A DNA stretch of 64,000 nucleotides, taken from Magallana gigas (lineage: Eukaryota). Position numbers and translations under genes: made by a program. Shown here one piece after another: positions 23,842 to 61,400 of the stretch. The notes under the pieces were generated by a model. It saw only the letters and a program-made list of their open reading frames with translations, did no database searches and was not told where the DNA came from. The stretch is taken from positions 23,436,001 through 23,500,000 of the forward strand of contig NC_088860.1 of NCBI RefSeq assembly GCF_963853765.1. The letters run 5' to 3'. The stretch's first letter is position 1, and each line of letters starts with the position of its first letter.

Positions 23842-24193
23842 TTGTTATACTTTCATGTTAAATACTGAAATCTGATTGGTTTAGACGCAGTTCATAATCT
23901 GTTCTATTACCCTCAGCGTTAGCAACGCACTTAGCAACGGGTAACATTACGAATTGTTACATGCGCGGTAATCATGCGCGTACGGTTCGCCTTAGAATTC
24001 ACGTTATTCCTATCTTAAAGCAGTGATGTTTTCTTTAAAATTAAGACATTCAGTATAACAAAATAAATAGTGCCTGTTTGGGAGGATAACAGTTGAAATT
24101 TACACCCCTCGGAAACCATTCGCGTCGGTTGACAATGGTTTTCTCGGGGTGTCAATTTCAACTGTTACCCTCCCAAACAGGCACTATTTATAT
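23842..24193 (+). mobile_element. Hairpin element family 1, copy A (no TIRs; putative non-autonomous Crypton-like DNA element) at the duplication junction
   Basis: Shared 5' end TTGTTATACTTTCATG and 3' end GGCACTATTTATAT with copies at 38600, 45723 and 59175. ~65 bp-arm terminal hairpin with a 13 nt apex deletion. Superfamily assignment is inference. Confidence 0.8.
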
Positions 24194-35575: not shown

Positions 35576-37588
35576 AGCTTTGTTCTTCAATTCAGATATA
35601 TTTATTTCTTGCCAACATAATTGATTATTATTATATTTTCTCATGAAAAAAGTATTAATTTGAACAATGATTTTTGTTGTTGATATTGCATACAAAATAC
35701 ATTTAATTTAGACATATAGGCAGTCATGCATCATTGGAAATTTTCGGCCAAGTCTTAATTACTGGCGTAGACAAACTCACTGAATTTTTATTGTTTTCAT
35801 GCCTTATTTTTTGTTCTCTTTCGATTGGCTCCTTAACTGTTTTTCGCTGGAAATCTCACCAATCGCATTAATGTTTACGTATGCATTACAACGGAATGTT
35901 TTCATATATTGACATTGGTATTAATATCTCCAAAACCAAAAAAATATATTTTTTACCTTGTGGATTGATAATATACTCATGAGGTATATAATAACTCGTG
36001 CAGTATATAATAAATATTTATGGGAACGAGAAAACTTCAGTTATATATTTGGCACATGTACCCGGTATATGGCGTGAAAGCTTATGCAAGATTGTCACGG
36101 GTTTTCTATGATGCGGGTGATAAAATCATTTCTACATTAGTAACAACAAGGAACAAAACATAATTATATTTCCTAAAATTGATGATATAAAGTGGACAAA
36201 TCATCGATTTTTTGAACAGTTTGTTACACGATGGAAAGGATGGAAAGGCCTTATACGTTACTTATTTGACAGCGGCTCCACATTTGGTTATGTTGTGCAG
36301 TTTCTTGATTTTAGCAGGGTATTTACAGACTACATCAATGGCGATATGGAAAATAAAGATTGTTAACTATTTGAAGGATGTAAATATATGTATATCCTAT
36401 CCCAAAGCTGAAATATTTTGACTTCTTAAGATATAATATTTTTTTAAAGTCGGGTTTGTTTTACAACAATAAACATTAGCTCCGAGGAGCTATTTTCCGA
36501 CCACATGATACCATTACATATAATTGCAACATAAAATATTCAATATCAATATTACACAACTAAAAACATACCGCAAGGATACTCTAAGACAATGAACACC
36601 TCAATAATTCAGACCTACTAAATTCAAACCTTTTATAAAGAAAAGCGACAAGTGCTCTAACAGTAGTTTCCATACTAACTACTTATGTTTGATTTGAATT
36701 TATTAAAAGTAATAATATTTTGAAATGACTCTGGTAGAGAAATCCAGAATTTTGCAGTTTCAAATCTAAAAGATTTTAGACTATATGTCGTTGATCCTAC
36801 AATCGGTAAAACAGCTGTATTTGTATATCTAAAAGAATATGACATTTCTTTAATTTGGATAAAATTTTGTGGGTAAGAAGGACTTTGTTTATTTAAAAAT
36901 CTTAAAATACTCTATTGCCATTGTTCTGAAACGCCGGAGTTTAAGACATGGTAGTTTTGATTTTTGAGGAAGTTAACTACTAGTATATGAATTAATGTAA
37001 TCGTCGTAGACAAATCGCTATGTCCTTTCCTTTATTTTTTCTCCATTTTTTTTTACGTTTCTCTCTTACCACAGAAATGTCAAACTAATGAACACAAGTT
37101 AAAATTTGACGTTATGAAACTATGATAAATAGTAAGTAATATGTGAGAGCTAAACTTAAGTTCGAAATCTATGGTAACACCAACTAATTTTACTTTCTTT
37201 TCAGGTTGAACCCTAATTCCGTCTATTTCATAACAGATATTTTTCTTCTTTTGTTTTTTCCCTATACATATGGCTTGAAATCTATTAAATTAGGATTGGC
37301 TTGCATTTGCTTTTCTTTGATTATAAAGTTTTTTTTAGTGAGTTTAAAATATCATTGCTAGAAATAGAAAAGGTGTTATCGTTGCGTAGTGATAAAGGTC
37401 TTTTTTTATTTTTCGATAGATTAAGGCTAAAAAATCATAAATATTAATGAATAATTGATCTTCTAAGAAATAGGCCTATATTACACATTTCGTGAGAACG
37501 CATTGTAAACAGTAACAGTACTATTTATACACTGTGTTCACATTAAACTGTGATAAAAGATTTCCGTCTTCTTCTTTACAATTTTAAC

Positions 37589-38158
37589 ACAAGTGAAAAG
37601 CTGTCAATGTGACAGCAAACCGGGTTTTGTTTAAAGTGAACTGTATCCCTAATCCATGTCAAATCTGAATTGATAAATGTTACCTACCGCATCCAGGGAA
37701 ATGGAGCACCCATATGCAATATTTTGCCCAAAAAATGACTAAGTTCAAAAGGTAGTATTTTTTTCATAAATTATCAGAAATAAAAATCCTAGCAATATGC
37801 ATACCTCTAATATACATGTATGTACAATTGATCTGCAAAAGAACGACTTATCTTGAAATCTGTTGGATGCGTTATCCGTAAAATAGAGGTACCCTGTATG
37901 CATTATTTTGTAAAAAAAAATGGCAATGTTGTAAAGCTGGTATTTTCCCTATAGATTATTAGAAATCAAAATCCTAGCAATATGCACACCTCTGATATAT
38001 GAACAATTGATCTGCAAAAGAACAACGTTCTATCTTGAATACTGTAAGAGGAGTTATCTGGACAATAAGAGTACCCTTTTGGCAGCCGCCCACCCATCCG
38101 ACCGCGCTTCTCACCATTTCAATAACCGGATTTTTTCGTTGGAAAACGTAGTTAAAAA
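37589..38158 (-). mobile_element. Non-autonomous Helentron (HINE) with two ~180 bp satellite monomers
   Basis: End hairpin gctgtca-atg-tgacagc plus aaaccgggtt; the other end has a gccgcccacccatcc microsatellite-like tract and taaccggat...gttaaaaa sub-terminal inverted repeats. Confidence 0.75.
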
Positions 38159-38599
38159 TCAGTCTTAGATTGTTCAAAATATTTAATTAAGTACACTATA
38201 ATCTATTTCTTTCTCTAAAAAAAATGAAAACACCTTGTTAAAGTAAAAAGATCAAATTGCTGCGCTTCTAGGGAGTTTGAAATTTCTCTGTTTCATTAAA
38301 AGAATAATTAAAAAATGGCTTTAAGAGAGAGGTTTTATTTTGGTTTTAATGATGACCATTTTTTTTCTCTTCTAGCACCTATAATACCAATGTAAACTTT
38401 GGGTATTCTGTAATTGAATCTAAAAACAACATAGGAATGCAATTTAAAAACAGCATGATGATTTTTAAGGACGATACTTTAAATTAAGCAACTAAAGGAA
38501 GTGTTTGAAATGACTGTTCATGGTTTGATGTAAAACAAAATTATCATGTTCCGATTGGATTTTAATCAATTACTTTTGTTGATCATCATACACTATTGA

Positions 38600-39006
38600 T
38601 TGTTATACTTTCATGTTAAATACTTACATCTGATTGGTTAAGACGCAGTTCATAATCCGTTCTATAACCCTCAGCGTTAGCAACGCACTAAGCAACGGGT
38701 AACATTATATAAATAGTGCCTGTTTGGGAGGGTAACAGTTGAAATTGACACCCCGAGAAAACCATTGTCAACCGACGCGAAGCGGAGGTTGACAATGGTT
38801 TTCGAGGGGTGTCAATTTCAACTGTTATCCTCCCAAACAGGCACTATTTATTTTGTTATACTGAATGTCTTAATTTTTAAGAAAATTTTACTGCTTTCAT
38901 ATAGGAATAACGTGAATTCTACAGCGAACCGTACGCGTCGGTTGACAATGGTTTTCTCGGGGTATCAATTTCAACTGTTACCCTCCCAAACAGGCACTAT
39001 TTATAT
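38600..39006 (+). mobile_element. Hairpin element family 1, copy B (body inverted, right arm duplicated)
   Basis: Same head and tail as copies A and C; segment 38708..38938 is the reverse complement of the body of copy C. Confidence 0.8.
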
Positions 39007-40043
39007 AATAGTTACTTCTTCTCTTCAAACACTGACTCCTTTAACAATACTAATATCTAATAAATAATGCATTCAATTTTAAAAACAATTACTTAGATCT
39101 TTTAAAAAGTATGATGCTTTAAGCAACAATAGCAAGTAAAGCATGGTATGTTTGTTTGCATTTGTATACATGTATTTTCCAAGTGATCTGTACTGTAACA
39201 AAGGAAAGCGTCATTGGGAGCTATTTATGAAAATATATACTTTATCAATAAGGTAACTATATATATGGCACATTGGCATCTTTTTTGAAACCGTTATTAG
39301 GAACGAAATCAATTAAAAGAAGCATTGTAACTTTGCTTTCCTCTATGCATACACTGCTAAAAATAGGTTTAAAAATGTTTGTCAAATGTTAGTATTGAAA
39401 AAAATTCATTTTCCGTTATTATTTTTTTTACATTTTCATCTCATTCTTTTGAATCACAAGTAAACTTAGTAAACCAAAAAAGGACTAGTATATACCATTC
39501 CCACGGGAAAATCATAAACCAGTATCAAAATTGGATGAATATTTTTCATGCTTACTCATATTATGACCCCAAAAATGTATATTAGAATGCAAAAATAGTG
39601 TTCTAAATTTTATCATAAAAGTTTAAAGAACTTATAATGGTAATTTATTGTATATTAAAATAGAATACAGAAACAAGCAAATCTAATTGAAATATCTAAG
39701 TAAATATATCACAACGCTAGCTAATACAATTGGAGTTGGACAAAATTGTATGATTGACAAATCTTGACATGGATTTGTATACAAAGCATCATCAAAACAG
39801 TAGGATGTCAAAAATTTGATTTATATAAAATTGATCTGGAAACAGGACCACTTTATACAGAAATTCATTTCTAAAGTTCGGAAGATCTGTTTTGTGGTTT
39901 CAATTAAATTTTTACTGTTCATTTCTAAAAAAAAAAAAAAAAAAAAAAAGCCAAAAAAAAAAAAAGAAAAAAAATAAAATAAAAAAAAATAAAAATAAAA
40001 AACAAACTTTGGTATTACATGTATCAACAAAGTATATACGTGT

Positions 40044-41072: not shown

Positions 41073-41145
<73 letters not shown>

Positions 41146-43927
41146 CACATTCACACGATTTCACGAGGAAGCAAACTCAAATCATCACGACGAAATGACC
41201 AAAAAAATTTGAGGAAAGCTGTTGCGTAACAATGGTTATTCAATCTTTTTGAATCATGTCTTTGTTTGCTTATAGTAATAGAAGAATGCCGGTATTAAAA
41301 GATGCATGTTATATTTGTACCATGCTGTATAGATTTGCAATGACTTTAATAAGAGTTATTAACATTCTAGACGTAATCGTTTAATCAATAAAACATAATA
41401 TGCAGAAGAATTATTTAACTATACGTGAACAATCAAAATATCACTTAACCATAATCCATTTGTCAACCCTAATTTGATAAACACTACCTATTCAAAGAAA
41501 TATGGTATTCTAAATTTTTTGCACAAAAAACTAAGTTTAAAATCTGGTATTTTTGGCATAAATTATTATAAAAAAAATCAACGCCCAAGTAATGTGCTCT
41601 TCTTTTTCTATCTTCAAAACTGTAGGAGGAGTTATCCGTACGATAGGGATATCCTTCCGCAGCCGCCCATCCGTCCGCCATTTTCACCATAACATAATAC
41701 ACAATAACCGGGGTTTTCCAGTCTAGACAATGAATGAGCGTCAAATATTGGTACTGTAATGAGTGAGATATCTATTCTTGTCTGAGAACTTAACGAAGTA
41801 CATTTGACCCCACGCCGCGACTTCCTTGTTTAGCATATTCTTTGTATGGATTTTTGAGATGGTTGACGGTTTGTTATTGTCATTTTTTCATTGTAACAAA
41901 CGTATTTGATACACCAGATGTCAGATAGTATTAAGAAATCACATTAAACATTGGGCCGAATAATTTAGCCAGTGCCAAAGTGGCATTTTTGCATCCACTT
42001 AAAATGCAGTTTCGTATAAAACTATGTACACGAAATGATTTACCATTGTCTAGTAAGTATGTAGCCACTTTTGGTTTCTAGTGTGTCTCACCTGGCAGGT
42101 TAGATATTTACCTTTAACAGGTAGTTTTACTATAGGAAATTAAGATTTCCTATCGGATTTTAAAATCTATTGGAACTTTTGTTCAAATCCTATCGGAATT
42201 TACAGGAAAAATAGGGGGAAAATATTTTTAATAGTAAAATTTTCACCTGACAGGTGACATACATTAATAATCAAAGTACTGAAGAACTGACAGGAGTTGA
42301 TATTGTCGATGTTTATTTATTTTAAAATCAATGATATGTTATTTTGCATGACAAGTACATGTAGTTTCTAATTTGAATTACGAACACTTTTATAATATGA
42401 ATTTTTGGACTTTTTCGACAAGAATGTCGAGAAACCCCCATATGAATCATGTTAAATAATATTTAAAGATAAAATTAATTCAATCAAACTATGTATCAGT
42501 AATAGAAATAGTTCTCGAAAATTGTATGGATCCAAGCAATATTGAACTCTGGTCTCGTTCAACCAAACGCTCGGCTGACACTGTAAATCTCCGACAAGGA
42601 TTTACGGATACAGCCGAGCGTCGAGTTGAACGAGACTATATTGAACTCTGGCGTAGGAATACATACGACTACAAAAAATATTTAAATTGTTCGTACCATT
42701 TAAAATCTGACTATTTTCAAGGTATTTATAAATAAATTTCCTTGAAAAACAATGCTTAAGCATACATTACATCGAATTTATCAAATATTTTCAAGAACTA
42801 AGTCTTGTCAGCAGCAATGATTTGTGCTGAGGTCCAAACACTGTTTCACTTTCGGTTTGTCTGAGTAACTGCATAAGAGAGTTGATTAAAATCAACTCCC
42901 AACAAAAGTAGTTGATCTTTTCGATACATGCTGCTTTGACGAGTGTAAAAAAGGAACCTTGGCATAATTATCCGGCACAGTGATATTAGCATTTTATATA
43001 TGTGTATAAAGTTAAGAAACTCAAACTCATATAAAACTTTCAACTAAAAGATCCAGTAAAGGTGAAAACAAACATAAATAATGTTTTTATGTTATCATTT
43101 TCTCTGATTTGAAACAAGGTAAGATAAATAAGGTAAGATAAATAAGAAAACCTTCCTTACCAACTTCAACCAGGCACAGTCAGGGAACCACTTAGCGTGC
43201 TCCAACAAAGGGTCATCTTCAGGATCCCATTTCAATAAAGTATTCCCGCAGTAAAAACATCTACATTTGTCTCCCTCTCCTGTTAAAAAATGTTAGATGT
43301 CTATTGATTGAACACAACACCTATCTGAAATAGTTGAACGTTGGGTGTCTACGATTAAGAGAAAATAAAATAAAGGCAACGATTCCAAAAAGGGAAATGT
43401 GTTAACCTACCAAGATAAAAGAAACCTGCTTTACAGAGATCATCAGGTCTTAGGGTTCTCTGGGTAGGCCATCCTCTAAATGAAGCCTTTCTAGCCGACT
43501 CCATGGCATAGTTTTGGAATTTAGGTCCAGGAACACTAGGTTTTTGATATTGTTCGTAGCTTTCCCCTATAGGCAAAGCTGGTTGACCGATTGCCAGGTC
43601 TTCAACATTATACGTGGGAATAGTAGGGGCAAAGGCTTCCAACATTAAACTACCATGCTTGATCCAGGGGCAGTTTGGGAAATGTTGGCGATGTTCCAAA
43701 GCCACAATATCACCCTCACACCAGCCACTAAGTATCCCCCCACAGTGTGTACATTGCACTTTGTCATCTATTCCTGTGTAATAAAACCCATCTTTTGCCA
43801 GATCTCGAGGTGAGACTGGTACCCCTGGTGGCCATCGCTGATCAAATGTCATGATTCGCTTGTTGTAATTGCGTCTTAGTGGTGCCAATCGCTCAAAAGG
43901 AGTCCGAGGTATAATGTCCATGCTCAT
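40044..43927 (-). CDS. Inhibitor of apoptosis protein (BIR-BIR-RING), IAP-A, 337 aa; exons 43927-43411, 43279-43161, 40870-40825, 40674-40540, 40240-40044
   Basis: Two BIR domains with intact Cx2C-x16-H-x6-C zinc ligands and a C-terminal C3HC4 RING (CKIC...PCGH..CC..C......CPICR). All introns GT-AG and phase-consistent (1014 nt). Small linker exons were assigned by eye. Confidence 0.88.
41076..41143. repeat. (AT)n microsatellite in an IAP-A intron
   Basis: Direct reading. Confidence 0.98.
41505..41725 (-). mobile_element. Truncated, degenerate HINE (180 bp family) in IAP-A intron 2
   Basis: Partial monomer (aaactgtaggaggagttatccgtac) followed by gcagccgcccatccgtccgccattttcaccat...taaccggggtttt. 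Confidence 0.6.
42550..42638. mobile_element. 89 bp hairpin MITE (tagtctcgttcaa-type TIRs) with a 10 bp direct repeat TATTGAACTC (extendable to 14 bp)
   Basis: gtctcgttcaaccaaacgctcggctg...cagccgagcgtcgagttgaacgagac; flanks at 42540-42549 and 42639-42648. Confidence 0.75.
42843..42858 (-). promoter_or_regulatory. ISRE-like site in IAP-A intron 2
   Basis: GTTTCACTTTCGGTTT matches the GTTTCNNTTTC consensus; shares an identical 15-mer with 33228..33242. Confidence 0.4.
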
Positions 43928-45722: not shown

Positions 45723-46088
45723 TTGTTATACTTTCATGTTAAATACTGAAATCTGATTGGTTAAGACGCAATTAATAATATTTTCTATTACCCTCAGCGT
45801 TAGCAACGCACTTAGCAACGGGTAACATTAAAAAATGTTATATGCGCGAAAATTATGCGCGTACGGTTCGCTGTAGAATTCACGTTATTCCTATATAAAA
45901 GCAGTAAAATTTTCTTAAAAATTAAGACATTCAGTATAACAAAATAAATAGTGCCTGTTTGGGAGGATAACAGTTGAAATTGACACCCCTCGAAAACCAT
46001 TGTCAACCTCCGCTTCGCGTCGGTTGACAATGGTTTTCTCGGGGTGTCAATTTCAACTGTTACCCTCCCAAACAGGCACTATTTATAT
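45723..46088 (+). mobile_element. Hairpin element family 1, copy C (apparently canonical)
   Basis: Head, spacer and an intact hairpin at 45944..46086 with apex tccgcttcgcgtc. Confidence 0.82.
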
Positions 46089-46421
46089 ATTGGTGGCTCC
46101 ATATATAGTGATACATAGGGGCAAAATTAACAATCTGGTTAAACTTAAGGTAGTATGGGTCGATATTAATGTGGAAACATAGGTAATCACAGATTACAAA
46201 GCTCACCGAAACGAGGCATCACCTTTATGAGGCATTACCTGTATGAGACCACCTTTATATATATTTTTATATGAAAATCATACTTTATGATCTTGGATAT
46301 TCATAGATACATGTACTGTTTTGACACAATATCGTATATCCTCTGTTAACATTGTATGATAATAATATGTTCATTTCATACGGTATTATAAGATACAATG
46401 TTTATCAATACAATAATATAA

Positions 46422-47136
46422 ACAAGTGAAAAGCTGTCAATGTGACAGCAAACTGGGTTTTCATTTATGTGAACTGTATCCATAATCCATGTCAATCCGT
46501 ATCCAGTGAAATGGAGTACCCAATATGCAATATTTTGCCAAAAAATGATTAAGTTCAAAAGCTGTTTTTTTCCATAAATTATCGGAAACCAAAATCCTAG
46601 CAATATGCACACCTCTAATATAAGTTCAAATGATTTGCAAAAGAACAACTTCTTATCTTAAAAACTGCAGGAGGAATTATCTGTACAATGAGTATATCCT
46701 ATATGCAATTATTGCCAAACAATGACTAAGTTCAAAAGCTGGTATTTTTTTCATAAATTATTGGAAATCAAAATCCTTGCAATATGCACACATCTGATAT
46801 ATGTACAATTTATCTGCAAAGAACAATTTCCTATCTTGAGAACTGTAGGAGGAGTTATCCGTACAATGAGGGTACCCTATATGCAATATTTTGCCAAAAA
46901 ATGACTAAGTTCAAAAGCTGGTATTTTTTTTCATAAATTATCGGAAATCAAAATCCTAGCAATATGCACACCTCTGATATAGGTACAATTCATTTGCTAA
47001 AGAACAACTTCCTATCTTGAAAACTGTAGGAGGAGTTATCAGTACAATGAGGGTACCCTTTTGGCAGCCGCCCGCCCGACCGCCATTTTCACCATTTTAA
47101 TAACCGGATTTTTTCGTTGGAAGACCCGGTTAAAAA
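46422..47136 (-). mobile_element. HINE with three ~180 bp monomers
   Basis: Same termini as 37589..38158 and 51313..52339. Confidence 0.8.
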
Positions 47137-50514: not shown

Positions 50515-51312
50515 TATTTTAGACTCGACCTCGTTAAGTTATAATTGAGCATGGTTTTGCGTATTCTTGTAAAATACAGTGTATTTATACCTTTTATAAT
50601 TTTATTCGATGTCATTTATTTAATTGAACACAACAGACAGAACATAGATAAATATTAATATTTTTTTGAAAGGGCTCGATGGTCTCGATCATTTTTTGAC
50701 TATATGGACCTTCTCTAAATTAAGAGCTCTAAATAAAAATGAAGGAAAAGCGAAAATATATATATATATTTTTTTACTATATAATAATTTATTACTAAAA
50801 AAATCATACCTTAAAATTTAAGGTAGATCCCATGGTTAACTGTTGACCATCCAACTTCCTTAGAAATATTTTATTTCTTGACGGGTTTTTTTTTCGTTGT
50901 AACCTTGCCATTGTGCTTTTATGACGTCATGATAAAAATGAAGCCTTCTAATAATATGTGATAAAAAATAATATAAAAGAAAAAGTATAAATCGGACGCC
51001 CTTGAAATATTATCAACCGCTTAATGCTATCCTCGGGATTATTTTTCTGATTTTTTTTAAAAATGAATCCATTGTACCTATCTACATTTGTAATTCTCCA
51101 AATATATAGCAAAATTTGGTATATTATTTGGGATAACGCCCACTAAAAAACCTAACGGTAGAATTAAGTTTTTTTTATTCTCTTTTGAGAAGTGGACAAG
51201 CATAGCCTACACCAAAGTGGATGTAGGCTATGCATGTCCACTTCTCAAAAGAGAAGTGTTTTTATATGTAAGGTAGAAAATAATACAACTAATCACGTAA
51301 TACAATTTATAG

Positions 51313-52339
51313 ACAAAAGAAAAGCTGTCAATGTGACAGCAAACCGGGTTTTCTTTTATGTGAACTGTATCCATAATCCATGTCAACACGTATCCAGTGA
51401 AATGGAGTACCCTATATGCAACATTTTGCAAAAAAATGACCAAGTTCAAAAGCTAGTATTTTTTTTTCATAAATTATTAGAAATCAAAATCCTAGCAATA
51501 TGCACACCTCTGATATATGTACAATTGATCTGCAAAAGAACAACTTCCTATCTTGAAAACTGTAGGAGGAATTATCCGTACAATGAGGGTACCCTATATG
51601 CAATATTTTGCCAAAAAATGACTAAGTTCAAAATCTGGTATTTTTTTCACAAAATTATCAGAAATCAAAATCATATCAAAATGCACACCTCTGATATATG
51701 TACAATTGATCTGCAATACCTTATATGCAATATTTTGCCAAAAAATGACTAAGTTCAAAATCTGGTATTTTTTTCATAAATTATCAGAAATCAAAATCCT
51801 ATCAATATGCACACCTCTGATATATGTACAATTGATCAGCAAAAGAACAACTTCCTATCTTGAGAACTGTAGGAGGATTTATCCGTACAATGAGGGTACC
51901 CTATATGCAATATTTTGCCAAAAAATGACGAAGTTCAAAAGCTGGTATTTTTTTCATGAATTATCAGAAATCAAAATCCTATCAATATGCACACCTCTGA
52001 TATATGTACAATTGATCAGCAAAAGAACAACGTCCTATCTTAAAAACTGTAGGAGGAGTTATCCGTACAATGAGGGTACCCTATATGCAAAATTTTGCCA
52101 AAAAATGACTAAGTTCAAAACCTGGTATTTTTTCGATAAATTATCAGAAAACAAAATCCTTGCAATATGCACACCTCTGATATATGTTCAATTGATCTGC
52201 AAAAGAACAACTTCCTATCTTGAAAACTGTAGGAGGAGTTATTCGTACAATGAGGGTACCCTTTTGACAGCCGCCCGCCCGCCCGCCATTTTCACCATTT
52301 TAATAACCGGATTTTTCCGTTGGAAAACCCGGTTAAAAA
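51313..52339 (-). mobile_element. HINE with five monomers (four ~180 bp, one truncated ~127 bp)
   Basis: Exact 180 bp period at 51841/52021/52201; same termini as the other copies. Confidence 0.85.
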
Positions 52340-53851
52340 TTGCTATTGTAGTATATTTAAAATCTGCTTCGAAGCGCCGAAAATGATAATTTCTATAATA
52401 TACCTAATGACGTACCACTATTTTGCGATGGCCTTAAAAAAGAACCAGATGGTAGATTTTCTTGAAACTTCGCAAATAAACTAGAGGTTTAACTTACATA
52501 TGGCTAAAAAAATGAAAAGATTTGCTATTGTAGTTTTCCCGCAAAATACCACAATCGGGCTTCTTAAAACACACTTAATGCGATGTGTTTTTGTTGACGT
52601 TTACAATGATTTTCAAATAGATTAAAAAGATCGTAAGTTTTAGAACACTGTCTGCATTTGGCCATTGCGTTTTGCAGACGAGAAAAATGTAAAAACTGGT
52701 TTCTTGTATTTGTGACTTTAGTAAAACATTGCTTTACAACAACATTTAAAAAATGCATGCCATTTTAAAATTCTAAAAAGGTTAAACATAAAGATACACT
52801 CTGTATTTCTTATATATATGAAAAGTGCAATAAGCAACCACCACAAATATTGAATAACGTTGAAAGTCGACCATATGGCTTGTTTTCTTAATACTTGAAA
52901 CTTAAATGAATTTCTAAAGTACACACATGGTTATCAGAGAAATTGTTCTATTTGAACATTTTAACTGTACAACGGTGAATTTAATATTCTACTGATGTAT
53001 ACATAGTGTACTTAAAATTGTTCCGTTGAATTTTTCCCCAAACAAAATTGTACAATCTCCAGTTGAACAATTTTAGATGTATTTCTTAAAAAGTATATAA
53101 ACGGACAAACTTAAGAAGACAAAACTTGTCTCAGACATACAATTACATATGCATTTAAATGTTTCGCATAATATATTGCCATCGAGCCATTGATTTCAAA
53201 GATTTGAGCCATTGCATCAAGGATGAAAATAAACTATATAATACCTGTTCCTATATAAAACAATCCATGCACCTGTGTTAAAATATATCATTCTAGCATG
53301 AATTCTAAAAATTCTGATTTAAAAAAAATGGATGATAAAAATATCATAAAAATCAGGACAATAACACAGATATTTACAAACAAATTAAAAACTTTTTTTG
53401 GTAAACATTAGGGGGGGGAGCCAGTGTTAAGTTATTCTGACAAATCACTGCAATTATCGCTGACAAATTATACTAGGTGACGACTAAAATAGGTATCATT
53501 TTTATATAGAACTGATATATACACGTTCTTTTAATTGCATCTGCCGCAAACTGATTATTTACGACACAGTTATGACGTAACACAATTATAAAGAGAGAAC
53601 ATCAACAAATTCAAATTCAAAATGCTATTTTTAAAAAATGATGAAAAATACAAAAATACAAATGTTAGATTTATATCTAATATATGTACCAAACTTGTCA
53701 AGAAATAACTTTTTTGTTATCATTCGCCTGTTCATTTCTTTGAAGAAAATACATGTTATTCATTGTGTTCTTGACATATTCGATCTGGATACCAAGACAT
53801 TAGGCAGCAGTACAATGTCTTGTATCTGTTTTTTAATGATGAGCTGCTATA

Positions 53852-58485: not shown

Positions 58486-61400
58486 TCATGAGATGTAGGC
58501 TTTAACTGATTTGGAGATAGGTTGTCGACAAATAGGACACTGTTGTAAGGAAACAGCACAGCTGGCACAACAGCAAATATGACCACAAGGTTCAAACAGC
58601 ACCCCAACATCTTCATCTAGACATATTTTACACAGTTTCTGTTCCTTCAGGTTGCGATTCTCTTCAATAATTTTTTGCAACCCTATTTTGAAAATAAGAA
58701 ACAATGAATGATTTCCACAAAAAGGTTCATTATAATAAAATCTCTTGAGAAATCCAAGCAATTTTTTCATGTTCCAGTAAATTTTTTTTATGGTAGCTTC
58801 TAGACATTGAGTTACAATTCAAAAGAAAATCATCATCTGTTTTCATCTTTTAATATAATTTATTACTGTATGATGTAATGTACTAATTTTCAAATAATTT
58901 TCTTTGGTACTTAAACTAGCTCTTTTATAGAAGCCAGTGTACTCACTTTTCCTCTCATCTGACCCTTCCTCAGCTGTTGAGGTGTGACTGGCTCCCGCTG
59001 CTATGGATGCTTGGCTGGTTCCTGCTGCACCAGCCCCTGCATCACTTGGCTTTGATGAAGCCGATGAAGAAGAAGATGGGTCATCAACTGTCTTCACAGA
59101 TGTCTCCTGTGCTGTTTAGTCATCAAAAAGGTTTTTTTTGGGGTTTTTTTTCCAGATGTTATAAAGTCAATAATAAATAAATAGTGCCCGTTTGGGAGGG
59201 TAATAGTTGAAATCTACAACCCTTGAAAACCATTGTCAGCCGACCCGAAGCGGAGGTTGATAATGGTTTTCTTGAAATTGAAACCCTGAGAAAATCATTG
59301 TCAATCGACGCGAAGCGGAGGTTGACAATGGTTTTCGAGGGGTGTCAATTTCAACTTTTACCCTCCCAAATAGGCACTATTTATTTTATTATACTGAATG
59401 TCTTAATTTTAGAAAAAAAAATTCTGATTTTATCAAGAAATGACGTGAATTCTACGACAAACAGTACGTGCATAATTTACGCACATAGAACAATTCAATG
59501 TGTTACCCGTAGCCACTGAAGGTAAATCAACGGATTATTAACTGCGTCTAAACCAATCAGATTTCAGTATTTAACATGAAAGTATAATAATATAAAGATA
59601 TTAAGAATGCTTTAATAGTTACACCTACCAATGGGCCCATGGCTTGTTTCTTCATCATCGATCTGCATTCGATTCATTTCCTGATATAAATTTTACAGTA
59701 AAATTCTGTCAATACAAATTCCAAGGGATTGATTAAATAACCATAAATTATATATTATGTTCATAGTGAACTCATGAAATCATATACATGTCCTATAAAT
59801 TCCTTACATGGAAAACAATTTCTAAACAACAAGGACTTGCTTATTGTTATATTGTAACACATGTACATGTAATAATGATCAACTTTCATAAAATAAATCA
59901 TGTTATTCTATATACTTTAAAGCAACTTTTATTCGAGTTGACTTTATTTTGCAATTAACTGGAGGTAAACTTGTTCATGACAACTTTTTTCATGACCACA
60001 CTTTCTGTACACTCGTTTTGATATAACACCCATATGGCAAAGATTAGACTAAGTTCGCAGCGAAAAATGTTCGCGACAAAGAGGCTCTCATGAATCTTGC
60101 AAGTTTTTCTGGCATGTGAATAAAACTTGTTTAACATGCAGTTTATGAATACTGGTAAAAAATAAATTAATCAGGTAATTATAATTGTATTAAAAATTTT
60201 TTTCTTCTGATGGTTCATATAGGTAAACAGGCATCATAATTTTTTAAAATGGAAGGAGGCAGACTCATCTTTAAAAAAAATTGTAACAAGCAAAAAAGAA
60301 AAAAGAAAACAAATTTCCTAATCGTGAAAATCCTGATCCATTGGGAGATTTCGGGGTCTAGTACCTAAAACTGAAATTTCAGTGTTTTTATCATTTATTT
60401 CAATTTGATTTTGACTCCCCCCCCCCCCCCATCCATCCTCTCCCTGATGCTGCATGCCAGCATTGCTAACCCAAGTTTATGTTATCAAAAAATATAAAAC
60501 AGAAAAAGTCAGCAGAAATATTTTCCTTTTTCTGTCATTTTTCATCAATTCATTTCCTTGTTTGAGTTCCCTTTAATTAAAATAACTTTTATTCAATTAA
60601 TTGAAAATAATACATGTATGTTACAAATAGATACATGTAGCATTTCCCTGTTATTTTATATATAAAAAAAAACTAATTAAAAAAGGATAATTTGATACAT
60701 ATTACATGCTAATTTTTGATGAATGAATTCACTTCTTTCAAACTGTATAAAGAAAAACTTGGTTGGTCAAAGTGATGCTTAAAGATGATTAAAAGAGGAA
60801 AGTATTTGGTGTGTCAAGCCAACCTTTAAGTATATTTAAGGAAAGACTCACTTAATTTTGTAGTCTTTATGTCACAAAAATTTCCAAGCCCCTTAAACAC
60901 TTAAGATGGCCTTATTTTCATTCATGATAAAAAAAGAATTGATATACGTGTAATTCTGAATTTTGATATGTATGTTTAGGGGAAAATCGAAAGATTTCAA
61001 ACTACCGGGTAATTGTAATAAATCATCCCACAGATCTTAATTGTAAATTTACATGTAATGCAAAGGGGTCCACTGAGCTAAAATATATTGGCATGAATTG
61101 GGGAAATATTGGGGAAGTGTGCATACATGCTATAACTTGGATTTCACTGTCCATTAGCTGACTTTGACTTTCATATTTTACATGCTCCAAAAACAGGGGG
61201 GGGGGGGGGGGGACTCTAATTTGCTATATTTAAATTCAAAAAGTCATTTTTCAATTTCTTTTAATTTATTTTAATTCTGCAAACCTCGCTTGCTTGTTTC
61301 ATGTTACAAATTTGATTCGTTGTGTTATCACTGAGGTGGACATTTCAAATATGAGGAAGAATCACCCTTAAGTGTTCAATACCAAACACACTTGGAACAA

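Follow-up and report, generated by a model that had tools for sequence, protein, structure and literature searches.

On contig NC_088860.1 of the Magallana gigas genome (NCBI RefSeq assembly GCF_963853765.1), a 143-nt near-perfect palindrome lies on the plus strand at positions 45944-46086 of a stretch of 64,000 nucleotides (contig positions 23,436,001 to 23,500,000; hereafter the window, whose numbering is used throughout). What is this palindrome for, and does it matter on which of the two DNA strands it folds? In a sequence-only reading, it was taken for the hairpin of an element that lacks terminal inverted repeats, folds on one strand only and moves through this folded strand, either as an attC-like substrate of a Crypton tyrosine recombinase or as the substrate of an HUH-type enzyme. 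The analysis reported here indicates that the palindrome probably serves as a cis signal at the 3' terminus of a rolling-circle transposon, a non-autonomous element of 367 bp and of Helitron2/Helentron type (HINE-like). The complete element of the window, which is called copy C of family 1, occupies positions 45723-46089 on the plus strand.

By direct reading and repeat finding, the palindrome consists of two 70-nt arms (45944-46013 and 46017-46086) which are 93% complementary, and folding and copy comparison agreed with this structure. On the plus strand, its centre reads CC-TC-CGC-TTC-GCG-TC-GG (46007-46023), with a TTC loop at the tip and a TC/TC 2x2 loop below it. A second, outer TC/TC loop is located 17 bp below the apex loop; its left half (45990-45991) is held by a CCCC clamp and its right half (46039-46040) by a GGGG clamp, as seen by direct reading, folding and copy comparison. 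The remaining imperfection of the plus strand is an A.C mismatch (A45967 opposite C46063). On the minus strand, the centre reads CC-GA-CGC-GAA-GCG-GA-GG, as it does on the plus strand of another copy in the window (copy B, 38762-38798). The minus strand carries the exact heptamer GCGAAGC around a GAA loop, a second 2x2 loop of GA/GA in the context CCCC-GA-G ... C-GA-GGGG, and one G.T pair. All the imperfections of the 143-nt palindrome are purine-rich on one strand and pyrimidine-rich on the other, and the purine-rich set described in the sequence-only reading (a GAA triloop in GCGAAGC, two tandem GA loops and one G.T) was borne out in full.

Copies of the element were located by pattern searches of the 564-Mb genome. 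A pattern that fixed only the arms and the CGC/GCG mini-stem returned 3,415 palindrome centres, its reversed control returned none, and nearly all of the listed sites carry one and the same centre. The pattern for the family-1 5' end returned 4,294 sites. The element is present in about 3,400-4,300 copies, and family 1 accounts for approximately 0.2% of the genome. About 95 family-1 copies were retrieved for comparison, and 42 independent full-length palindromes were used for the mismatch counts. The TTC loop was kept in 41 of them, the inner TC/TC loop in 40, the outer TC/TC loop in 38 and the A.C mismatch in 36, a conservation which by itself reflects only the make-up of the master copy, as the family-1 copies are very similar to one another. 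Since the four imperfections are kept in 36 to 41 of the 42 palindromes, they belong to the family consensus, which is not a perfect palindrome, and are not the product of decay. The earlier claim that the mismatches are ancestral holds to this extent; however, copy B can no longer be counted in its favour. Sequence comparison revealed that copy B (38600-39007, plus strand) is a host copy which received a second, reverse-oriented copy (38706-38937) at an internal GTAACA..TGTTAC hot spot and then suffered a deletion at a CGCG microhomology. It is neither an inversion nor independent support for the mismatches.

The hairpin keeps its orientation relative to the element body. Of 78 copies, 75 were canonical, as the strand read from the 5' end into the 3' hairpin carries TTC; a single copy was flipped and two were unclear. 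The flipped one (L013, G000:C1:6192161-6195193, approximately 1228-1591) is a full-length family-1 copy with GAA on the top strand, and the flip probably arose by an inversion that the palindrome itself mediated. Many family-1 copies carry deletions which centre on the palindrome. In a few others (L054, L077, L124 and L079/L105), GA has taken the place of TC in one arm of the outer loop, so that two bases changed together and the arms pair perfectly again. Such a double change is best explained by copying from the opposite arm, and since these copies are all singletons or segmental duplicates, the copying would have followed insertion; such arm-to-arm changes suggest in turn that the palindrome folds back or switches templates in vivo.

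The ends of the element were placed by 40 or more aligned copies and by the points where reads and contigs of other copies part from copy C (45722/45723 and 46089/46091). The 367-bp unit runs from TTGTTATAC... to ...CACTATTTATATA, and its 5'-terminal base is T in all copies. The first 10 nt, TTGTTATACT (45723-45732), are complementary to AGTATAACAA (45933-45942), which is separated from the palindrome by a single base. Direct reading also revealed a weak hairpin near the 5' end (TTTCA ... TGAAA, 5 bp, 45732-45751). On the other side, the palindrome is followed by the tail ATA (46087-46089), and the cleavage and joining point falls after 46089, as given by nested insertions with exact empty sites and by tandem junctions. 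Helitron2 was defined by a 5' hairpin, a short inverted repeat 0-4 nt from the 5' end and a 3' partner of this repeat in subterminal position, just upstream of the hairpin (Bao & Jurka 2013, PMC3627910), and Helentron-associated non-autonomous elements share that layout (PMC4067079, PMC7492417). The element is therefore not devoid of terminal inverted repeats, as had been stated; the 10-nt terminal/subterminal pair is a hallmark of the Helitron2/Helentron group.

The behaviour of the element points in the same direction. Insertions into other copies of the element left exact empty sites, in which no base was gained or lost (three host positions, approximately seven insertions). Head-to-tail arrays were also present in family 1, including a triple array in L011; their junctions read ...TATATA^TTGTTATAC, and a contig joint runs from 46086 back to 45723. 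Such arrays are what rolling-circle read-through would produce. Furthermore, the genome contains at least 150 matches to the Helitron-like Rep domain (Helitron_like_N), in open frames of about 2,700 amino acids, and the Pacific oyster is known for its many Helentron-type non-autonomous elements (Cg_HINE; Vojvoda Zeljko et al. 2020, PMC7492417). The locus is also contained in public sequencing runs that are labelled oyster metagenome. The 5' T, the 5' inverted repeat with its partner just upstream of the 3' hairpin, the lack of target duplication, the very high copy number, the head-to-tail arrays and a host rich in Helentron-like Rep-helicase genes are all shared with Helitron2/Helentron/HINE/DINE-1/Cg_HINE elements (PMC3627910, PMC4067079, PMC7492417), and so, perhaps, is the 5' hairpin. 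Canonical Helitron1 was considered and rejected, because it needs 5'-TC ... CTRR-3' ends and insertion at A^T, whereas the ends found here are TTGTTATA ... TATATA; its 16-20-nt hairpin 11 nt from the end and its lack of a terminal inverted repeat are likewise features absent from this element.

The same apex was found in two further families. When the genome was searched for the apex with other flanking bases, all sites were mutated family-1 copies except for those of a second family of approximately 384 sites and 690 bp, in which the 17-nt apex is identical. Family 2 is unrelated to family 1 outside short common modules, namely the 5' octamer TTGTTATA (family 2 begins TTGTTATAT), the module TATAACAAAAYAAAT directly before the long palindrome and the tail TATTTRTATA(A)TA, and its inverted repeats are laid out as in family 1. 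Its stem also measures 17 bp from the apex to a second pyrimidine 2x2 loop (TT/TC), with C-run and G-run clamps. When the pairs of the 17-bp stem were compared between the two families by script, 10 were changed on both sides, seven were identical and none was changed on one side only. The third family is represented by the metagenome contig OBLZ010080675.1 (L140), in which the same 17-nt apex sits on a 17-bp stem that differs in sequence from both others and includes one A.C, and the outer loop is TC/TC with CCC/GGG clamps. This contig is 1872 bp long, AT-rich and eukaryote-like, and ends 36 nt past the hairpin; since a genome search revealed that its stem is absent from this oyster genome, it comes from another organism. 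It was the one true hairpin among the 120 stretches returned for the apex 17-mer in metagenomes, the other 119 being chance matches, and the matches in viral contigs fell only in GC-rich phage coding sequence. In the oyster genome, when other stems were allowed to join the apex to the G-clamp, only three chance matches came up, which lie in another repeat and form no hairpin. Where the pre-palindrome module continued differently, the sites were likewise subfamily variants or chance matches. In all three families, the purines of the apex and of the outer loop lie on the bottom strand.

Invariant apex and bubbles, fixed spacing and covarying stems together are the signature of a structured cis element which is read by a protein, and they argue again that the mismatches are not decay. 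Family 2 also holds an internal look-alike of its own 3' end (L091, G000:C1:1262898-1265928; L092, C1:2731672-2734702; L093-L104), formed by a small perfect palindrome ATATTGACC/GGTCAATAT and then TTTTTTGATA^TTGACCGG. Head-to-tail dimers of family 2 with a 564-bp period occur at several loci and start exactly at this look-alike, which looks like re-initiation at a pseudo-origin.

The target sites were deduced from 55 distinct 5' flanks and 59 distinct 3' flanks of family 1. In the 5' flanks, A at -8 was present in 47 (p = 7e-15), Y at -9 in 47, A at -10 in 32 and A at -1 in 35. In the 3' flanks, A at +1 was present in 37, T at +2 in 58 (p = 8e-27) and R at +3 in all 59, and positions +4 to +6 were mostly T, T and A. 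The resulting consensus, (T)AAYA-N7^N-TRTTA(C), is an inverted repeat with AAYA at -11 to -8 and TRTTA at +2 to +6, in which a single base separates the cut from the 3' arm. Covariation was seen between positions -9 and +3 (T-A 16, C-G 10, C-A 6, T-G 4; Fisher p = 0.016), and in family 2 the 5' flanks have AYA at -10 to -8 in nine of ten. The 3' arm of the target, N-TRTTA, resembles the first bases of the element, T-TGTTA, and the 5' arm resembles the 3' subterminal repeat (...TAACAA), so that the geometry of the target is that of the element's own 3'-to-5' junction. A target of this type was not found described for Helentrons, which are reported to prefer TT. The internal GTAACA-N8-TGTTAC hairpin of the element is itself an insertion hot spot, as eight of the 59 distinct 3' flanks fall in it, in both orientations and at mirrored positions, even though the whole family occupies only about 0.2% of the genome. 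In copy C, it spans 45810-45840 (GTAACATT-A6-TGTTAC), and copy B arose by a nested insertion of this kind.

By our inference, one geometry suffices to draw both element junctions (5' and 3'), the tandem or circle junction and the target, namely a short stem that is cut at the 5' edge of its 3' arm; at the 3' end and at junctions, the loop of this stem would hold the large hairpin. This single geometry fits an HUH enzyme whose substrates are folded single strands, as is the case for IS200/IS605. Mobilisation through a folded single strand is favoured in its HUH form by the lack of duplication, the sequence- and structure-specific target and the arrays; nothing points to a tyrosine recombinase.

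Several observations weigh against the assignment to the Helitron2/Helentron group or depart from its descriptions. The 3' hairpin of this group is described as 5-30 nt long and approximately 8-35 nt from the end (PMC3627910, PMC4067079, PMC7492417), whereas here it measures 143 nt, keeps its bubbles at conserved places and stops 3 nt short of the terminus; it is thus far beyond the described size range, being 5-10 times longer than the described hairpins. The 3' repeat lies about 148 nt from the end, as opposed to 20-60 nt, there is no central tandem-repeat or microsatellite module, and the 5' hairpin has a stem of only 5 bp which overlaps the end of the repeat. The insertion preference reported for Helentrons and HINEs is TT or T-rich (PMC4067079, PMC7492417), whereas the target found here is AAYA-N7^N-TRTTA, in which only the T at +2 recalls it. 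Moreover, the expected autonomous partner, whose end signature would be TTGTTATA at one end and TATAACAAAA plus the CGC-TTC-GCG-apex hairpin at the other, was not found in one 10-kb Rep stretch (L046) and in coordinate comparisons; no Rep match was within reach of the listed family-1 or family-2 ends, and the sampled Rep loci were without the end motifs. The transposase can therefore only be inferred. The family motifs were not in the Cg_HINE supplement, the palindrome table of which is illegible.

The class of the element and the principle of HUH mobilisation with a 3' hairpin signal are already known. The sequence-only reading knew of no description of mobilisation through such a folded single strand; however, Helitron 3' hairpins have been published as cis signals on single-stranded DNA (PMC4778049, PMC5876387, PMC3627910, PMC4067079, PMC7492417). 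What is new is the giant hairpin with an invariant bubbled apex common to families and organisms, and the inverted-repeat target which mimics the junction.

Does one strand fold preferentially? Folding with DNA nearest-neighbour parameters gave -73.1 kcal/mol for the TTC strand and -75.4 kcal/mol for the GAA strand, with z of approximately -21 and -23 against shuffles. Because about 65 Watson-Crick pairs are formed in either strand, each of them forms the hairpin once it is single-stranded, and the claim that the hairpin folds on one strand only is not supported. The gap of 2.3 kcal/mol is made up of 1.4 from A.C versus G.T, 0.4 and 0.5 from the two 2x2 loops and 0 from the triloop; the true gap at the tip is larger, because the nearest-neighbour tables ignore the special stability of d(GCGAAGC). 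Since TTC is on the top strand in 75 of the 78 copies, the purine-rich version is the bottom strand.

In the bat Helitron1 element Helraiser, the top strand is cut, joined and moved, and the hairpin is a terminator whose loop sequence matters more than its stem (PMC4778049, PMC5876387). The element described here resembles Helraiser in having a 3' hairpin as a transposition signal, in the weight of loop identity over stem sequence and, as we propose, in single-strand HUH cleavage. By this analogy, the top strand would most likely be the active one, its TTC loop and pyrimidine bubbles serving as protein contacts. The strand which the sequence-only reading regarded as optimised is the bottom strand in the Helitron convention. 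However, the assignment of the top strand is drawn from the Helitron1 analogy only, and the bottom strand, on which each cut comes after TAACA-N, accommodates the inverted-repeat target and the logic of the ends just as well. The single-base wobbles are not one-sided either, since G.T pairs occur on the top strand in the family-1 subfamily CAGCC and in the outer stem of family 2, which argues against a simple optimisation of the stability of the bottom strand.

We also weighed the possibility that the purine-rich bottom strand is the functional folded substrate. GCGAAGC and the stacked G.A pairs would nucleate the hairpin, and this strand would be nicked and moved, with the hairpin at the origin end 3 nt from the cut, or would be bound by the enzyme. 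Its cut logic resembles that of IS200/IS605 and IS91: both bottom-strand cuts follow TAACA-N, one in the flank at the hairpin end and the other in the element's own ...TATAACAA at the opposite end. The heptamer GCGAAGC is exact on this strand, the purine polarity of apex and outer loop holds in three families, and no experiment on Helitron2/Helentron strands exists. In addition, d(GCGAAGC) melts at 76.5 C, whereas analogues with pyrimidine loops melt at 33 C or show no transition, and mini-hairpins of this type occur at single-strand replication signals (PMC13037366). However, the heptamer lies on the strand that the Helitron convention treats as non-transferred, the active strand of Helraiser being the top one, and the computed gap is only 2.3 of about 75 kcal/mol, both strands folding. 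Stability comparable to that of the apex could be had from any GNA loop, yet none of its 17 bases varies, and this strict identity points to base-specific protein contacts and not to optimised stability. The outer loop of family 2 on the bottom strand is GA opposite AA and not a tandem G.A. Moreover, about half of the 12 sampled 5' ends without a canonical palindrome centre were truncated towards the 3' side, and all of the palindrome-bearing copies examined had a 5' end once nested insertions were resolved; in these small samples, the truncation pattern weakly favours transfer starting at the TTGTTATA end. A bottom-strand substrate is thus rather unlikely.

The imperfections may also have no role in folding. 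They would then provide base-specific contacts in the duplex, or would make the two arms non-equivalent and so mark the true 3' end against its mirror image. Beyond the palindrome, the bottom strand continues with TTTGTTATACT, which looks like the real 3'-to-5' junction, and a symmetry-breaking device would be needed because of this mimicry. The direct CTCG / CTCC / GTCG / CTCG repeats on both arms, the apex that is invariant in sequence and not merely structure-preserving, and the hairpin orientation fixed at 75 to 1 agree with such a role. Parvoviral end hairpins provide a precedent, as a mismatched bubble makes their arms non-equivalent. However, 10 of the 17 pairs of the stem are compensatory, and the inverted repeats of the target show some covariation, which indicates that pairing within a strand matters; HUH nucleases, for their part, cut single-stranded DNA only (PMC4778049, PMC5876387). 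We consider a role confined to the duplex quite unlikely. The likeness to parvovirus terminal hairpins and d(GCGAAGC) mini-hairpins (PMC13037366) extends to an HUH-type initiator, a long hairpin, a small bubble and the exact GCGAAGC. A parvovirus-like rolling-hairpin replicon was nevertheless rejected, since flip and flop do not occur at similar frequency (75 canonical, one flipped and two unclear), and hence there is no rolling-hairpin replication.

Selection at the RNA level, with a small-RNA precursor made from the strand that carries the G.U and G.A pairs, is very improbable. The asymmetry of G.U versus A.C is a classical sign of a transcribed structured strand, and the element is present in poly(A) RNA reads. 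However, coverage was equal in both directions (approximately 240 versus 204 at the 5' part and 80 versus 52-85 over the palindrome), 76% of the RNA reads continued into unrelated sequence, as expected of read-through of many copies, no Rfam family scored above threshold, and other wobbles favour the opposite strand. In the repeats just 3' of copy C (46140-46560), unlike in the hairpin element, poly(A) RNA reads were strongly one-directional (e.g., 72 versus 6 and 168 versus 22).

There is next to no likelihood that the element is of Crypton type, with a tyrosine recombinase, or that it is a miniature inverted-repeat transposable element or foldback of the cut-and-paste (DDE) kind. In favour of these readings, it is a short, AT-rich sequence that codes for nothing, has many copies and carries a long inverted repeat, but it has no terminal inverted repeats spanning both ends, its palindrome is wholly at the 3' end, its empty sites are exact and without the target duplication that a cut-and-paste family would leave, its copies form head-to-tail arrays, and nothing like the short direct terminal repeats of Cryptons was seen. 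Beyond an imperfect palindrome with conserved mismatches, its ends and targets resemble neither Cryptons nor attC sites, although no search for a recombinase gene was made.

In the mechanism that we propose for a Helitron2/Helentron-type element, an HUH Rep-helicase transposase encoded elsewhere would act at the two ends of the element and at the target, in each case on a single strand that has folded. Its specific contacts would be the bubbles and the apex, and the hairpin would act as a termination and end-alignment signal. The moving strand would be the top strand, with its TTC loop and pyrimidine bubbles, by analogy with Helraiser. Extending this, we speculated that the lineage may read one folded geometry at every cut: an AAYA/TRTT stem with the scissile bond at the 5' edge of the 3' arm, which would be common to both ends of the donor and to the target. 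The giant hairpin would be grafted into the loop of the 3'-end stem, the invariant apex would be a docking and strand-discrimination module, and the purine/pyrimidine asymmetry of the bubbles would mark the strand. We hold this wider proposal only tentatively.

Other systems offer partial parallels. Integron attC sites are imperfect palindromes with conserved mismatches and variable stem sequence, in which the choice of strand is encoded by the imperfections; they differ in that a tyrosine recombinase acts through extrahelical bottom-strand bases, and neither a cassette structure nor an attI partner was seen here. IS200/IS605 elements (e.g., IS608) and IS91 are likened to the element by subterminal hairpins read on a single strand, by the lack of target duplication and by a target which matches their own end sequence. 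However, they are prokaryotic, use Y1/Y2 enzymes, have hairpins of about 20 nt and insert at a plain tetra- or pentanucleotide target, and membership is not proposed. These bacterial insertion sequences are cited in PMC5876387.

The remainder of the window contains further copies and unrelated repeats. The arm motif occurs nine times within the 64 kb, compared to 0.24 expected. By sequence comparison, copy A (approximately 23842-24193, plus strand) is the same element of a different subfamily, in which a deletion took the inner left arm of the palindrome, and copy D (approximately 59176-59590, minus strand) is an older copy with the inner part of the palindrome duplicated. Among the reads at the locus, no read-derived contig skipped copy C. 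An unrelated inverted repeat with 38-nt arms, 82% complementary, and a 9-nt spacer is located at 42552-42636, and a 68-bp (AT)n tract at 41076-41143. Another repeat, in which a GC-rich block and a short stem (TAACCGG..CCGGTTA) come after tandem units of about 180 bp, is present in three copies (37577-38159, 46407-47136 and 51299-52340) and resembles the tandem-repeat-bearing Cg_HINE elements of the Pacific oyster.

In many invertebrates, Helitron2/Helentron elements account for a large part of the genome. To our knowledge, however, their transposition has never been reconstituted, and the mechanistic knowledge all comes from one bat Helitron1. The cis signals of the element described here are unusually legible, in that the 17-nt apex is invariant, exactly 17 bp separate the two bubbles, the stems covary and the target mimics the junction. 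They provide concrete oligonucleotide substrates and mutants for the study of how an HUH enzyme chooses strand, end and target. Furthermore, an animal genome can retain a near-perfect palindrome of 143 bp at thousands of sites, and its central deletions, arm-to-arm conversions and one flipped copy are useful for studies of palindrome instability there.

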